Part shown: positions 15,900-49,689 of the stretch, one piece after another
Layout: each line of letters starts with the position of its first letter
Position numbering within the stretch: the first letter of the stretch is position 1
NCBI GenBank assembly: GCA_904063045.1
Contig: CAJFCJ010000076.1
Location: 74,253-138,252 of the forward strand
Source: Dimorphilus gyrociliatus
Lineage: Eukaryota; Animalia; Annelida
Direction: 5' to 3'
Length of the DNA: 64,000 nucleotides
The notes under the pieces: generated by a model
Databases searched by the model: none
Told to the model about the DNA's origin: nothing
Seen by the model: the letters and a program-made list of their open reading frames with translations, nothing else
Position numbers and translations under genes: made by a program

Positions 15900-18130
15900 C
15901 AACAGGTAAAATAAGATATAGGGAACAATGAACTTTTCCTCATAAATTTGTAGACAGCTAATAATGGATTTTGTTTGATGATTGTTGGTTTGTGTTAACT
16001 CATTGTATTATGGACAGGACTGACTACTTCTAGGATAAAAATATTGATTGTAATAATATCTTAAATACATTGAGCTGGTTTTATGACAAAGTTTCAAAAA
16101 TTAAAAAAAATGTCAACATACTTCCTGCTGCGGGTAGTTCTCTCACTTTCTCTTGTGCATTTTACTGCTTTAACCTCTAAATCAGCTGTGTTTATTTTGT
16201 ACACATTGGTTAATATGTTTGTCACAGGTTGGTTCAATACTTGACATTCCCTTTGATCTGTTAAATCCAATGCTTGCTGTCTTGCTGTCCATTTTAGTAT
16301 TGAATAGGAGGTACAAATTTTAAAGTGACGTTAGCACCAGTTGTGAATTGGTTTGTCATTGTCAATGGTAATAACATAAATATTATCATGATGAGAGGTA
16401 TTACCTCTATAATTGGAAATAACATTTATGGCTTTATCCTATTTTCAGTATCAACATGATTAACTGTCACATCTATTTCTTGGTTATTAGCCAATTTTAA
16501 TCTTGTTGCATAATATTTTCTTCTGCCATCTTCATATAATTCTACTTCATATAAACATTTGGTTACATCTGCAGCTGTTATCTCATATGGTCCATTCCAT
16601 TTAAACTTGGTATCCTTTCTATACATCTGTGAATATTTTCTCTCCTAATATGTACCTACCTAATTGTCATCTTTATAGGTTGGTGGTTTTCTCATCAGGG
16701 TTATATTAGCTCTATTCCTGTATTCCTTTTTCTTTATTACTGATTTACATATTGCAGTTGTCCTTAATTCATCCATGTCTTGCTTTCTATCAAATAAGAA
16801 TTTGGTTGTTGGCTCTATTCTTGGAATTGTTAGCAATGTATCCAACATGTTTTGATTTCTAAGCCCATATAGTAATTCATGGGGAGTTTTTCCTGTACTT
16901 ACAACTGGAATTTGGTTGAGGCAGCCTTGAATAATTGGTAACTGCTTTACCCAATTGGTATACCCTTCTATTACCAGTAATTTATGTAGTGCTCCTCTTA
17001 CTTCCAAGTTTCTTCTTTCTACTATGCCATTGCTTTGGCTATGAAAGGCTGTAGTTTTGATTTTCCTTACACCCAAGGATGTGACAAGCTCAGCAAATAT
17101 CTCACTTAAGAAGTTTCTTCCTTGATCAGTTAACATTTCGTCTGGTAGACCAAAATTAGGAAAATAATTATAAAACAAGTGTTTTAGAATCTCTTCTGAA
17201 GTTTGTCCCTTAAGAGGATACTGGTTTGTAAATCTTGACATATGATCTACAATAACCAAAATGTGCTTGAATGTATTATGTCCATTAAGAGGTCCAATAA
17301 TATGCATGGTAATTCTTTGTAGAGGCTCAACAGGATGTTGTGTTTCCATCAACTCATACCTATGGCTTGGTGCTCTTTTCTCTTGATTTGTTCCAGTACT
17401 TTTGTCAAAGCCACTTTATGTTCTTCTAAAGTGTTATTAAATATGATAATATCATCTATATAATTGAGGTAAAGTTTATCCATTCCATTTAAAACAAATG
17501 CTGCCATAACATAGCTGAAGTGAGGTGGGGTATTTGCAAAACTAAATGGCACTCTATTAAACTCAAAGAGGCCAAATGGAGTTATAAATGCTGTTTTCCC
17601 TTTATCTACTTTTATCTTAATGTGGTGGTAAGCACTTGTGAGGTCAAGTACAGAGACATATCTATTTTCTCCACCTAGTTAATCAAATAAATCTTCTTGA
17701 TGAGGGACTGGATATCTGTTTTTCTTAGTCTGCTTGTTGAATTTTCTATAGTCAACACAAAAACTTTTTTTGTGTTCCTTCTTTCTTTTGTGCAAACACT
17801 TTTACCTATTCTAATAATTCCACTATTCAGTAAGTCATTAACTTGCTCTTTACATTCATTCATGTTTATAGGTGGTAATCTGTATGGTCTTGAATGGGGT
17901 GGCTTCTTCAAAAAGAGAGGTGGTAAATCAAGTGTGCCAATATCTGTTTGATCTTTAGCCACAATCTCTTGAAATTCTGTAACAATAGTTATCAACTTTC
18001 TTCTTTCTTTTTCAATTCTGGTTAATTGCACTACCTTGTCTGAATTCTTTTGATTTCTGATCACTTCCATTGAGGTTTTATCCTTAAGAGTAAATAATGT
18101 TTTTAAGTAAGTTTCTTTTCCATTCTCTTC
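15900..18130 (-). mobile_element. Internally deleted Gypsy/Ty3 retrotransposon remnant: RT N-half, integrase core with GPY motif, downstream env-like ORF
   Basis: PYRLP...CVDYRKLN...DLTSAYH...TAFITPFGLFEF..VPFSFANTP...YIDDIII (RT); HIIGPL...ILVIVDHMSRF...TDQGRNF...SNGIVERRN (rve); KWNGPYEI. Confidence 0.92.
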
Positions 18131-31648: not shown

Positions 31649-32297
31649 CAAGAAATTTCTGAACAAAAAAAGTTTTCTCTGATTATTTTCTAAAATTTTT
31701 TCTTTTTGTCTTTTGTATGATTCTTTTGATATAATACAAAACTTTTTTCTGTTGGTATCAGATAGTGTTTAGTCATATCTCAACTGAATGTTTGCAATTT
31801 TAGGTTACTTATTGTATACTGTGTAAATTAGTAAACACAGAACAATTGCTCATTTTTTAAACAATATACTCAGGGCTATGTTTAGTATTTGTTTTTTTTT
31901 GTTGATTTCCTACCTACAAGACCTACGGTGTTTTCATCTCTTTCATAATTTATATAATACTCTTTAGGGTCAGTTACTGAAATGTTTTAAAGAGGTTTTA
32001 GGGTCAGGTATCCAAAAATGGTGTCGATTAAGGCATAACAAGTATATTTGAAGCTTTGATAATTCTTTGTATTTGGTCTCAAAAGTATATACTGGTCCCA
32101 TCAGGCGTACGCAGAAAAGACTATACTGCAACAGAATCCAATGGAAGATAATTCACCTTTCCACTCACTCAATGTACAAAGAAGAACTGAAACAGTTCTT
32201 GATATTTTCAATAGGCTTGTTAGTGTTATACTGTCAGCATCATTCCATTTCTTTGAAATATCACCCAATACTGCACCCAGGCGCAGCAAACACATAT

Positions 32298-32463
32298 GGG
32301 GTCGACAGAAAACGTCCACAACTGAGAAATTTCAAGACTAGATTTTGGATTGAGAAATGGTTAGGAAGAAGAAGACAGCAACTGATATATACTTAGGAGG
32401 GTCTCCTCTAAGGGTTAGGGTTAGGGTAAAAGCACTGATTTGTGGACGTTTTCTGTCGCATCC
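32298..32463. mobile_element. MITE copy (opposite orientation, ~41-bp internal deletion)
   Basis: GGGGTCGACAGAAAACGTCCACAA ... TTTGTGGACGTTTTCTGTCGCATCC. Confidence 0.9.
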
Positions 32464-44215: not shown

Positions 44216-45735
44216 ATGGAAATTAATAGATGGTGTATTGCAATTTTTGAAGATCCTACTCAATCAATTGATTTTACTGAAAAAAATTTAAAACTTCAAA
44301 TTAGTTTTCTATTTCATTGTTACTACAATGCCTACTATAGCAGATTTCATGTAACTTTTGATTCTGCTATCTGTAAACAATTCTTTAAGTATCAATTATT
44401 AAGAGGATGTTGTATTAAAGAGGCATTAGCTGACCCTTCAGAAAATGTGGAAGAGCTAAAAGTTATTTTTAAATATATTCAAAAACTAACATCTGTATCA
44501 AAAAAATCTATGAGAAAATTTTATAAAAAGCAGTTAGACTTAAAAAATTATAGATTCTTAAAAGATTTAATGAAAACAGTTAAAGAGGAGGATGCTTTTA
44601 AAAATATTTTGGACTTTTATGAAAAGAAAGTGTTAAATATAAATAAAAAAAATTGGAAATCATTGGAGAAAGAAGTGATAAAGTGTTCAGCAACTGGAAA
44701 AAAAGTTACTTAAGTTCTATAATGACTGCCATGCTCCAACTCCATCTAAAGAAACAACAGCAACAACAACCAACCCTATCCCTCAATCATCTGCAACTGA
44801 AAATGAAATGGAAAATGAAACAACTCCAGCAGAAAACACAGACATTATTGTACCTGCACAGCCAACTGCTACTACTGCAAGAAGATTTTCAGAGGAAACA
44901 ACAATTATTGAACATAGACAACAATCTGGAATTGAAACTGTTACACCACAACTATTTGAATCAAGATAAGAATATTTTCAAGAACAAGAAATGGCTATAT
45001 CAGCACTGCAGTCAGAATTGGAACCACTTACAACAGAAATTGAATCTGCACAACCAACAACTGGAATTGAATCTGCAGCACTATCAACTGGAATTGAACC
45101 TGCACCACCAACAACTGGATTGGAATCTGAGTTACCATCTACAAATTGTGAAAATATTGAGGAAATGCATATGGAAATCTACAATCAGATGGGTCTTGGG
45201 GAGAATTTGGAAGTTGGAGAAATGATGCAGTTGGATGAGGATGTCCAGAATGATGATGCTGTAAGTAGACAGGATTTTTTTTTAAAGAGTTGCAAAGAAA
45301 GAATGAAAGGAAATATAAATTATGTTAATTATTCCAAGAACAATCAATACTTTCAATGATCCTGATTTTTCACAAAAAACTCAACAGAACTTCCTTAAAG
45401 AAACAAAACCTTTCCATGATATTTTATCAGATTATACAATTTTAACAAATGATTTTCTAAAATTAGAAAATGGTAAATTCTTAAAGGCTAAAAATATGCT
45501 AAAAATTGATAAAAGCTTTCAGGTGTTTAGTATTGAAAATTTAACAATTCAAGATGTCTTTTGTATAATTAAGGGATGGAATTTAACAACAAATATTTTA
45601 ATTTACTTGAAAAATATTTCTGTAGATTTTGATATAAAAAAAGCAGTAAAGCAATTGCCTTTTTCCAATCATCATTTATTTTTTGTTAAAAAATCATTTA
45701 ACAAGGAGATAACAAATGATTTAAAATTATTATAA
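44216..45735 (+). pseudogene. Unidentified disrupted ORF: basic N-terminal domain, Thr/Glu/Pro-rich linker with 4 x 27-bp repeats (45030-45137), C-terminal domain
   Basis: Segments 44216-44713, 44712-45359 (one internal stop) and 45322-45735 look like one frameshifted ORF. Repeats read TTEIESAQP / TTGIESAAL / STGIEPAPP / TTGLESELP. Confidence 0.5.
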
Positions 45736-46499: not shown

Positions 46500-46536
46500 A
46501 GCCAATCACAGTAGAGAAATTCTCAACAGCCAATCA
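46500..46536 (+). promoter_or_regulatory. Tandem CCAAT (NF-Y-type) boxes
   Basis: AGCCAATCA at 46500-46508 and 46528-46536, preceded by a G-rich GGTGGAGGTGGTG tract. Confidence 0.55.
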
Positions 46537-46930
46537 GCACCCAGCTTTCATCAGTGTAAGAAAAATTATGGACCAGGAAGGTTCATTTCCCAACAAGCCT
46601 TTATTGAGGTAGGATGTCTGTGCATTTTTTCAAAGAAAATTTTTTAATTGTGATTTTTGTGTTTTTGTGTTTCATGTTTCTACCTGGACTATTACCACTA
46701 CGTATGGACCAGTGCTTGGAGAATACATTTGTTAACTACAACTTCTTTAAGGTTATGTACTAATGTAATTAGGTTGTAACTTAAATAAATTTAAGTTTAG
46801 GATTTAAATTGTAAATGGTAAAAAAAAAGTAGGAAACTTAAGTTTAGGTTAGGGATCAGTAATTTAAAGGTAAATTAAAGTGTAACTTGTATATTTAAAG
46901 TAAAATCTTCTTTTAATAAGTAGGGTTTCT

Positions 46931-47781
46931 TGCATTTTGAGTTGTAATCTTTTTTTGAGGTAACCACTCCTAATGCTAATTTTTTAAGAGTTCCTTAGGA
47001 TAGGATTTGTAGGATTTCCTGCATTGTTGAGTCCTAATCTTTTTTTGAGGTGAGTACTCTCAATGCAATTTCTTTTGGTTTTAGGTTAGGTTAGGCTGTG
47101 TAAGGTTTTCTGGCATTTTTGAGTTTTAATGCAAATTTTTTTCAATTTCTTTTAAATTAGGCTATATAAGGTTGTTAGCAAACTGGGTTTTAATCCTTTT
47201 TTGGGGAGACTACTCTTTTTGCAATGTTTTTCTGGTATATTAGGCTTTGGTATTTAGGCTGATTTATAAATTTTAAGATAGGTTTAAAGGTTAAAAAATA
47301 TTTGAGGTTTAGGTATGACAACATGAATTTTGATCCTGTATGGGAAAACTATTCCATGTTGATGAAAGGGTTTTTTATTTAAAACAAATTAATTTTAAGT
47401 TTAGGTATTACAAAAAAAATTGTATTGTAAGGTTGGTGCAAACTGGGTTGTAATCTTGTTCTGAGGTAACTACTCTGATTGCAAATTTTTCTGGTTTTTA
47501 GGTTTTGGTATTAGAACTTAAATTAAAATTAAAAGAATAGGGTTAGGTTAGGTTTAATTTTGGCTTTGTAATTTAATTTTAACTTAGGAGTTAAAGTAAC
47601 TAGGTTTTTTAAATATTTTTAAATATTATTAAGTTTAGAAATTATTTTAAAGTGTTCTTGCAAGTGGGGTCTTAATCTTTTTTTGAGATGATTACTCTAA
47701 TTGCACTATTTTTCTAGGTATTTAACTTAAAATACAGCAACAGGGATTTTAATCTTGTATGAGGAGACTATTCTATGTTGC
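46931..47781 (+). ncRNA. Array of seven structurally conserved bulged hairpins plus one internally deleted unit; putative structured RNA or ssDNA element of unknown class
   Basis: Units at 46931-46977, 47020-47067, 47178-47222, 47319-47361, 47437-47483, 47659-47705, 47737-47781; deleted unit at 47113-47132. Compensatory substitutions occur in three stems. Transcription is not shown. Confidence 0.6.
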
Positions 47782-49459
47782 AAAAAATTAAAATTAAGAA
47801 CTGTTAGGACTGCAGGTTGTGTAATATTTTATATAGATTATATTTTTTTTCAAAATGAGGAGTTGTAGTTGATAAATAAACTTGTTATGCTAAGTATCTT
47901 TTGGAAAAAAAAATCTCCGAAAAAAAGGTCAAGTATTTTTGTTAAATGTTGATGTAAAGGAAAATATTCAACTTAATTTTATTTTTCATAAATGGAAGCT
48001 ATATTGGAATTTGAAAGAGAAGACTGCTGGATGGACTGAAAAGAAATTTGTACCTTTGGACTTGGCTATCTACAAGAATTATCCTTCTCTTCCACTATGC
48101 TTAAGAAATATCTTCAAAGAAAATGTCATGTGATATGTTTTGTAAAATTTTTTTGTTTATACTATGTTTTACTTGAAACAAATCTATCTGTGTGACTTAA
48201 AAATATCAATGTGCCAATAAAAAAGTGAACTTACTTGTTGTGCTAAAAAATTAAAAAATAAATGTACATTTTGTTTTTTTGAATTTGAAAAAAATATATA
48301 TGAATTGTGATAAAAAACAAATATCTCTTCAAAAGATGTAAAAGTTTAAAAACTAAAAATAATGTTTTTCTATGGTTTTAAAATTATACAAAACTTTAAT
48401 GCCAAATGTCTCAAAAATGATAAAAGATAATTAAATTCTGTAAACAGATTTAGGATTGGCAGGTGTAAATTAGTCTATATACAAAATTTCAAAACCCTAT
48501 CTTAATTAATAACAAAGTTAATTTTTGCATGACGAATGTTTTGTATTGGCTTATATGCCACAATATTGACCAAACTTTACGGCGTCATAACTCATGAACC
48601 ATAAGAGATAATTGAATTCTGTAAAAAGATTTGACATCAGTGTAATGAAATTGAGCTATATATGAAATTTCAAATTCCTACAATTATTAACAACCAATTT
48701 AGTTTTTACATGACCAATATTTTTTATATAGGCTTGTATACCAAAATATCAAACTTTACGGTGCCATAACTGAACTGCGAGAGAGAGAGAGAGGAAGAGA
48801 TAAAGGGGAAGATTGTGGTTAAAAGCTTTTAACTGAACCTATCTTAAAGTTCTTTTTAGCTTTTTGTTGAACATCATAAGATAGATTACAATCTGAAAGT
48901 TTAATAAAGTCTTTTGGACTATTTTTAGGTCAATTACCAAAGAATTTCAAACTATTTCTCATCAGTTTGTTTTTTTGCCATTTTTTTTCATCTAAATTAG
49001 TACTGTACAGAGGCGCAACCAATTTGGCTCTGTTAAGAACTGTACTAATTATTTTAGAGTCAGAAAATTGTATATAAAAAATGTTTAAATCTGAAAAATA
49101 AAACAAATTAGTCTCACGATCAAATATGAATATTCAACTGGCTTGAATTCATTTTTGCTTTTTCTGTTGTTTTTTCTTAAAATCGAAATATTTTGATTTA
49201 AAAATGGATTGTATGGTTGTGAAAATTTTTTTCTGTAGGATAAATGATTTGTGAAACATCATGCAAAATTTCAGATAAATATCTATATTTTTAGAATCAG
49301 TTTTGAACCCTGTTCATTTTACCTTGTTGAAAATACCTATAGCCAGATCTATTTGTAATAATCTAATAAAGAAATACAAAGTAAATAAACTTGTTTATTA
49401 CTTAAAGATGGTGTTGGCTCTAGCTTATCTTTTATGCTTTATACAGAGTGCACTACACA

Positions 49460-49689
49460 GATATGAAATTCAACCAGACGAAATCTATAATCTTGATCCT
49501 CAAAGTCCTTTTAAAGTATCCTTTGATGTAGCCGAATACATATCAGATGTTGATGGTATGGGTGTACTAAGTTTTTTTGAAGCAATTAGAGCTTGTAAAT
49601 TAAGTTGTAAACTTAAATTTTATCAAGCTTCCTTGAGTGAATTATATGGAAAAGTTAGAGAAATTCCACAAAACGAGTATCTTGAATAG
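49460..49689 (+). pseudogene. GMDS: Isolated GDP-mannose 4,6-dehydratase fragment
   Basis: [34 protein letters not shown]...[19 protein letters not shown] matches the recalled GMD segment [30 protein letters not shown]...KFYQASTSELYGKVQEIPQ. Confidence 0.85.

Follow-up and report, generated by a model that had tools for sequence, protein, structure and literature searches.

A 64,000-nucleotide (nt) stretch of the genome of the annelid Dimorphilus gyrociliatus (the window; contig CAJFCJ010000076.1 of assembly GCA_904063045.1, where the contig position is the window position plus 74,252) carries an array of hairpins at 46931-47782. The array consists of seven full hairpin units on the plus strand, one internally deleted unit (u3) and two decayed copies of a unit of the CAACAT type. 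A typical unit is 47 nt long, with a range of 43-48 nt. The annotation of GCA_904063045.1 has no gene over the array. Judging by the sequence, the array is probably an undescribed structured RNA, and it is treated as a putative one below. The features of the locus are collected in Table 1.

Table 1. Hairpin units and other features at the array locus (window positions).
Feature	Position	Strand	Basis or remark
Hairpin unit u1 (GCATT type)	46931..46977	+	pattern, fold, 66.6 bits
Hairpin unit u2 (GCATT type, 7-bp outer stem)	47020..47067	+	66.6 bits; dG -18.0
Unit u3, outer stem and GAGT retained, apical half deleted	47113..47132	+	sequence alignment
Hairpin unit u4 (GCAAA type; apical stem TCC/GGG)	47177..47223	+	60.7 bits
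Hairpin unit u5 (CAACAT type; GAAT/ATTC, TCC/GGG)	47319..47361	+	held out; 17.7 bits, E 0.025
Decayed 5' part of CAACAT-type unit	47402..47421, second copy 47505-47524	+	direct-repeat family D3
Hairpin unit u6 (GCAAA type)	47437..47483	+	68.9 bits
Hairpin unit u7 (GCAAG type)	47659..47705	+	67.7 bits
Hairpin unit u8 (GCAACA type; GGAT/ATTC)	47736..47782	+	held out; 33.1 bits, E 7e-7
Long-range helix, 5' strand, core 46727-46747	46709..46770	+	pairing search, duplex energy
Long-range helix, 3' strand, core 47857-47877	47836..47905	+	pairing search, duplex energy
Telomere-like tract TTTAGGTTAGGG	46843..46854	+	leader
Telomere-like tract (TTAGG)x3	47081..47095	+	linker
Telomere-like tract TAGGGTTAGGTTAGG	47538..47552	+	linker; direct-repeat family D11
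Promoter-like block: CCAAT 46502-46506 and 46530-46534, initiator-like TCAGT 46551-46555	46502..46555	+	sequence reading; putative function
Short first-exon candidate: ATG 46568, end GAG/GTAGGA, GT 46609-46610	46568..46610	+	sequence reading
Candidate acceptor (AG 47997-47998), exon-like block, AATAAA 48216-48221	47997..48221	+	sequence reading; putative function

Units of the array and their fold

The units share the pattern GRRT-NN-TRATCY-loop-GRGR-(4-6 nt)-AYTC, which has seven matches on the plus strand (46939, 47029, 47185, 47325, 47445, 47667 and 47744). A scan of the 64-kb window found no match to the same pattern on the minus strand and none outside the array. The seven-hairpin array claimed by the initial annotation is therefore confirmed and is unique within the 64 kb. 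The covariance model proposed there as a check was trained on five of the seven units, with u5 and u8 held out. It recovers both held-out units; everything else in the window scores at most 13 bits, except for the minus strand images of the units.

Successive units, u3 included, are spaced by 90, 92, 65, 142, 118, 222 and 77 nt. Owing to the variable spacing, which ranges from 65 to 222 nt, Tandem Repeats Finder reports no array for the hairpin unit. Regular satellite DNA was rejected as a description of the locus, there being no constant period and no Tandem Repeats Finder array.

Each full unit, taken alone, folds into the same hairpin, with free energies (dG) of -11.4 to -18.0 kcal/mol and z values of -2.5 to -4.3 against dinucleotide shuffles. 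The reverse complements fold far worse, four of the seven giving z values of 0 to -0.8. The deleted unit u3 folds no better than its shuffles (z -0.14).

The outer stem of the hairpin has 5-7 pairs, and its inner three positions are freely variable (U-A, A-U, C-G, G-C). The second stem has four pairs, GRRU/AYUC, with A-U replacing G-C in u5 and u8. The apical stem is made of A-U, U.G, C-G, Y-R and U.G pairs, with C-G replacing U-A in u4 and u5, and is capped by a U-rich loop of 4-5 nt. The 4x4 internal loop has Y-N-U-R facing R-A-N-Y. The U and the A never vary, and next to them every unit has a pyrimidine on one side and a purine on the other. The loop can be drawn as a continuous helix with Y.Y and R.R mismatches or, as in the initial annotation, as a single Y-R pair between two opposed 3-nt bulges. 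In the latter drawing, the pair is that of the T or C after GRRT, which was said to track the R of RAN. This position does form a standard pair in all seven units. The tracking is not significant on its own, however (about 0.29), because only C-A would fail. UAA faces GAN in four units, an arrangement that we take to resemble the UAA/GAN three-dimensional motif.

The mean column identity across the units is 76%, and the 18 invariant columns sit in the apical half and the internal loop. The sequence is thus too well conserved for the view that structure is conserved rather than sequence, which was overstated.

Pairing of the hairpins is maintained by selection

In the model-fitted alignment of the seven units, standard pairs occupy 87.1% of the pair cells. 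Shuffling within columns leaves 78.5 +/- 2.1% of the cells paired, and none of 500 shuffles reaches the observed value. When the 3' partners are slid, 42-48% of the cells are paired. Simulated neutral evolution on a tree built from the seven units with FastTree gives 58 +/- 5.5%, with none of 1000 runs reaching 87%. Both sides have changed in 8 of the 18 pairs, compared to 0-3 in the slid versions. Of the pairs in the stems, 92 are Watson-Crick and 16 are G.U, whereas A.C is absent; the structure therefore exists on the plus strand only. The pairing of the hairpins is maintained by selection.

These results bear out most of what had been noticed about the stems. The covariations of TCT/GAG with TCC/GGG, of GAGT/ACTC with GAAT or GGAT/ATTC, and of the outer stems are real. 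The argument that G-T pairs favor the plus strand also holds, given the G.U and A.C counts and the poor folding of the minus strand. The initial annotation had cautioned that a G/T skew makes such pairs easy to obtain by chance. This caveat is answered in part, as the dinucleotide shuffles, the slid partners and the tree-based simulation all lie well below the observed pairing. The array region is indeed G/T-skewed, with a GC skew of +0.26, in a window of 26-39% G+C.

The similarity between the units extends beyond the hairpins. About 25 nt upstream and 35 nt downstream also align from unit to unit, indicating that the array grew by duplication of 90-140-nt blocks. As read from the sequence, this shows that the hairpins arose by tandem duplication in place. 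Compensatory differences separate u6 from u7 (C-G/U-A), u1 from u2 (G-C/C-G) and u8 from u5 (U-A/C-G). Such changes between neighbors with homologous flanks point to selection at the array locus. Taken together, the homologous flanks and the compensatory changes speak for duplication in place and selection over repeated insertion of a mobile element, although the array could still belong to a composite element.

The linkers have a composition of their own. TAGG occurs in them 26 times versus 4.9 +/- 2.2 times in shuffles, an enrichment of about five-fold, and TTAGG occurs 18 times versus 2.3 expected, both on the plus strand only. A T run of at least 5 follows seven of the eight units. The TTAGG runs in the spacers and the T tract after most hairpins had been pointed out before.

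Long-range helix and surroundings of the array

Positions 46,727-46,747 can pair without interruption with 47,857-47,877, giving a run of 21 contiguous pairs around the whole array. The longest comparable run on the minus strand has 12 pairs. Runs of at least 20 are rare in shuffled sequence (3 of 500 shuffles), and the longest run among 380 genomic controls with the same geometry is 19. The extended duplex has an energy of -38.0 kcal/mol, compared to -15.8 kcal/mol on the minus strand and -19.5 +/- 3.8 kcal/mol in shuffled sequence (z -4.8), and none of 382 genomic controls is as low. Because the helix contains four G.U pairs, it would form on the plus strand only. Enforcing it costs +0.7 kcal/mol over the free minimum free energy structure. 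The first AATAAA after the array (47875-47880) lies inside the 3' strand, so that formation of the helix would mask it.

Upstream, 1.2 kb separates the array from the end of the nearest coding gene. The promoter-like block lies between the two, about 300-400 nt upstream of the array, and its local G+C is above that of the flanks. No acceptor downstream of the candidate first exon extends its reading frame beyond 37 codons. This lack of a coding continuation suggests that the putative transcript is probably non-coding. The flanking open reading frames (ORFs), including the one in the exon-like block at 48.0-48.13 kb, have neither a protein family nor a look-alike. A protein-coding host was therefore rejected, since there is no in-frame acceptor and no family or look-alike for these ORFs.

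The window has several other features. Two tandem copies of a unit of about 181 nt, 74-77% identical, occupy 48388-48700. They follow the exon-like block and precede a piece of GDP-mannose 4,6-dehydratase at 49279-49686 that has the size of a single exon (Pfam E 2.5e-20, only profile positions 73-143 of 332). This piece is annotated as a 93-amino acid (aa) protein. The next gene, at about 50.3-51.15 kb, encodes an ABC2-type transporter. No further dehydratase exons are seen ahead of it, and the piece is probably a gene fragment. The introns of the neighboring ABC gene are 57-60 nt long and have loose donors (GTAAGA, GTATGA, GTTTGT and GTAATA). On the other side of the array, overlapping plus strand ORFs of 165, 190, 122 and 137 aa lie in different frames at 44216-45735, and only the 122-aa ORF is annotated. 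A 27-nt coding repeat is present four times in this group (45023-45129), and none of the ORFs has a Pfam family. The group is possibly a fast-evolving or mis-annotated multi-exon gene. A minus strand ORF at 16660-17352 contains an integrase core domain (Pfam rve, E 1.7e-9) and is a retroelement remnant. At 32290-32460, an inverted repeat, GTCGACAGAAAACGTCCACAA / TTGTGGACGTTTTCTGTCGC, surrounds about 130 nt ending in TAAGGGTTAGGGTTAGGG. This element resembles a miniature inverted-repeat transposable element (MITE) that carries telomere repeats, and it has no similarity to the hairpin unit.

Interpretation and likeness to known systems

No known RNA family fits the array. A search of the whole window against Rfam at gathering thresholds gave no match for it, and a search of the array at E up to 10 gave two chance matches only, to a long non-coding RNA (lncRNA) fragment and a plant 5' untranslated region (UTR). 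The initial annotation had likewise assigned the hairpins to no known RNA family. Degenerate unit patterns were also run against metagenome contigs. One scan found nothing and the second found seven single chance matches with no outer stems and no arrays. Four of the seven have the same sequence, and one contig among these four also carries a transfer RNA (tRNA) and a match to plant MIR5294.

The individual classes fail for different reasons. ARAGORN finds no tRNA, and the strings in u4 that resemble the A and B boxes of a tRNA or a tRNA-derived short interspersed element overlap each other. Polymerase III genes are discounted on the same overlap and on the 77-90-nt spacing, which leaves no space for upstream promoters. 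The motifs of box C/D or H/ACA small nucleolar RNAs (snoRNAs) are missing, as CUGA is present in u6 only and neither a C box nor a 3' ACA in any unit. A self-cleaving ribozyme has no Rfam match even at E up to 10, and the unit is a single unbranched hairpin. Y RNA and stem-bulge RNA would share the terminal stem and the U run, but neither Rfam Y_RNA nor sbRNA matches. For a U7-like RNA, motif and hairpin stand in the wrong order. A spliced-leader or SmY RNA would be suggested by GTAAGG upstream and an Sm-like tail. However, the tail, AWUUUUUCURG, is found in u4, u6 and u7 only and no second stem-loop follows it. This idea was dropped because of the restriction to three units and because D. gyrociliatus has no spliced leaders (PMC7854359). 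Helitron 3' ends were rejected because CTRR follows three units only and Helitron hairpins are far shorter and less AT-rich than those of the array. An array of micropeptides was rejected because the units lack an ATG on either strand.

The explanation preferred here, with a probability of roughly one half, is that the locus encodes a lineage-specific structured RNA domain. It would comprise the seven selected hairpins, the UAGG-rich linkers and the closing long-range helix, carried in a non-coding transcript or its long intron, and would either bind proteins as a multivalent platform or give rise to hairpin RNAs of about 47 nt. A polymerase II transcript would start at the CCAAT-box block near 46.55 kb and traverse the domain of about 1.15 kb. 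Most likely, a short non-coding gene would host the domain as a single long intron; otherwise the domain would be the body of an unspliced lncRNA. The plus strand-only helix between 46709-46770 and 47836-47905 would close the domain around the seven paralogous hairpins. The most likely mechanism is that the hairpins are docking sites for one RNA-binding protein specific for both sequence and shape. The UAGG linkers may bind heterogeneous nuclear ribonucleoprotein (hnRNP) A/B-type proteins and, with the hairpins, form a multivalent ribonucleoprotein platform. Alternatively, processing of the transcript could release each hairpin as a small RNA of about 47 nt. In either case the bracketing helix would fold a long insert away where splicing favors introns of about 66 nt. 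The median intron of D. gyrociliatus is 66 bp, and short introns are spliced best (PMC7854359).

The genome is compact, with a size of 73.8 Mb, short intergenic regions and few repeats. In such a genome, a 1.1-kb array whose pairing is kept by compensatory change is unlikely to be idle DNA.

Several points weigh against a selected RNA domain. All seven units are paralogs from one locus in one genome. The pair counts come from an alignment fitted to the structure, and 49 columns underlie the tree. For some pairs of units, the 35 nt downstream are nearly as similar as the hairpins themselves (27/35 and 37/47, respectively, for u4 and u6), so that part of the similarity between units is simply due to recent duplication. 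The three telomere-like tracts, of 12-15 nt each, allow for a mobile element as the origin. The statistics of the bracketing helix are post hoc, as they were calculated after the helix had been noticed. In DNA this rich in A and T, the promoter, splice sites and poly(A) signals are putative, each being read from a match to its consensus. The docking role of the hairpins is likewise putative.

The same paralogy and near-equal flanks would be expected of a neutral tandem repeat whose unit is palindromic by chance, with pairing that stems from recent duplication and the G/T-rich composition. The shared pairs would then not be independent, and the GC skew would favor G.U pairs. This explanation is unlikely, the least probable of those weighed here. 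Dinucleotide shuffles fold less well than the units, the slid partners and the neutral simulation fall short of the observed pairing, G.U pairs occur to the exclusion of A.C, and some of the eight pairs with changes on both sides differ between neighboring units. In another explanation, the array is a relic or internal repeat of a mobile element, or a subtelomere-type repeat. The hairpin would be a recognition structure of a retroelement RNA or of single-stranded transposon DNA, and the pairing would be selected in the element and not for the host. The TTAGG tracts would be telomeric and the bracket would represent the termini. The tracts among the linkers, the truncated and decayed units, the inverted repeat that flanks the array (pair I6) and the inverted-repeat element with TAAGGGTTAGGGTTAGGG at 32.3 kb of the window all agree with such an origin. 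Nevertheless, the window contains no second copy of the unit, and no reverse transcriptase, transposase, ribozyme or long terminal repeat (LTR) adjoins the array. There are no LTR-like direct repeats around the locus, and target-site duplications are not seen in the sequence at the bracket ends. The bracket pairs on one strand only (-38 versus -15.8 kcal/mol), unlike a terminal repeat at the DNA level. The linkers are homologous between units and were thus duplicated in place, not added independently. In the telomere-primed model, known from Athena-type elements, the element RNA is antisense to the G-rich strand, and yet the strand that folds here is the G-rich one. Furthermore, transposable elements make up only 4.87% of the genome (PMC7854359). 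A mobile-element origin is thus possible, but somewhat unlikely.

It is more doubtful that the array is a cluster of microRNA (miRNA) precursors with diversified seeds. The hairpins would be freed by Microprocessor, or as mirtrons from a mini-intron of their own of about 57-81 nt followed by tail trimming, and diced to about 21 nt. Tandem paralogous hairpins on one strand are typical for miRNA clusters, each arm has about 21 nt and each loop about 5 nt, and the imperfections of the stem are miRNA-like. The hairpins of 43-48 nt are, however, smaller than the shortest curated precursor, which has 49 nt, the mean being 60 nt (PMC11701709). Drosha requires about 11 bp of basal stem below its cut, in a total stem of about 35 bp. 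This basal stem is absent from all units, and the 30-nt flanks pair inconsistently. The putative seeds, taken as the first 8 nt of each arm, vary among units. Conservation is highest in the apical half and the internal loop, and no Rfam miRNA family matches. A canonical animal miRNA by the MirGeneDB criteria, which call for a precursor of at least about 49 nt with a loop and two arms of 20-27 nt, is excluded on size, on the missing basal stem and on conservation that is not centered on the seed. The mini-intron variant gains from a GT located 10-20 nt upstream of most units, from a CURAY-like site, a U run and an AG located 10-35 nt downstream, and from the real introns of the neighboring ABC gene, which have equally loose donors. 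It would require exons of only 0-20 nt, though, and the ends of the stems do not match GT/AG splice sites.

If the structured RNA domain preferred above does give rise to transcripts, it would join the few structured non-coding RNAs built from repeats that occur beyond flies and mammals. It would also show a closing helix to be a way of handling a 1.4-kb insert with splicing tuned to about 66 nt. The putative protein-recognition surface of the hairpin is clear enough for fishing out a partner. Should the array belong to a mobile element instead, it defines the recognition hairpin of that element. A more speculative extension, possible but not to be expected, is that the array represents a new class of animal small or modular RNA. 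Its members would be RNAs of about 47 nt or docking modules, present in multiple copies in one looped-out long intron of a dedicated non-coding gene and read via the 4x4 internal loop and the wobble-rich apical stem. The UUAGG linkers would recruit hnRNP A/B or telomere-repeat-binding proteins, making the locus an annelid counterpart of the architectural repeat RNAs, in a genome that has lost most of its dispensable DNA.

Four known systems invite comparison. Host genes of snoRNAs resemble the proposed arrangement in having a short non-coding spliced host with a functional RNA in an intron. The hairpins of the array, however, lack C/D and H/ACA boxes and any Rfam match, and there would be seven units per intron and not one. 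Clustered miRNA genes and mirtrons also consist of tandem paralogous imperfect hairpins on one strand, with arms of about 21 nt, and an intronic or non-coding host is probable for the array as well. They differ from the array in unit size (43-48 nt here), in the basal stem, which the units lack, in conservation, which is not seed-centered here, and in hairpin ends, which are not set by splicing here. The array of iron-responsive elements (IREs) in the 3' UTR of the transferrin receptor contains several small hairpins with a conserved loop and bulge and covarying stems, which lie in an AU-rich non-coding stretch and bind the same protein. The annelid array shares the repeated small hairpin, one per putative protein site, and the AU-rich non-coding surroundings. 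The sequences of the loop and bulge are different, and the nearest upstream coding gene ends 1.2 kb away.

The Xist A-repeat and Drosophila hsr-omega belong to well-known RNAs in which a short structured or motif-bearing unit is present in many copies in one non-coding transcript and is separated by U-rich linkers of variable length, as would be the case here. The annelid array has no sequence similarity to either, is just about 1.1 kb long, and its unit is a 47-nt three-helix hairpin with covarying stems. The hsr-omega gene has a short ORF and one intron, and its repeats diverge fast but keep UAGG-type nonamers, (A/T/C)TAGGTAGG, that are bound by hnRNP A1 homologs (bioRxiv 10.1101/695486). 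The linkers of the annelid array, with their five-fold enrichment in UAGG, are alike in this respect.

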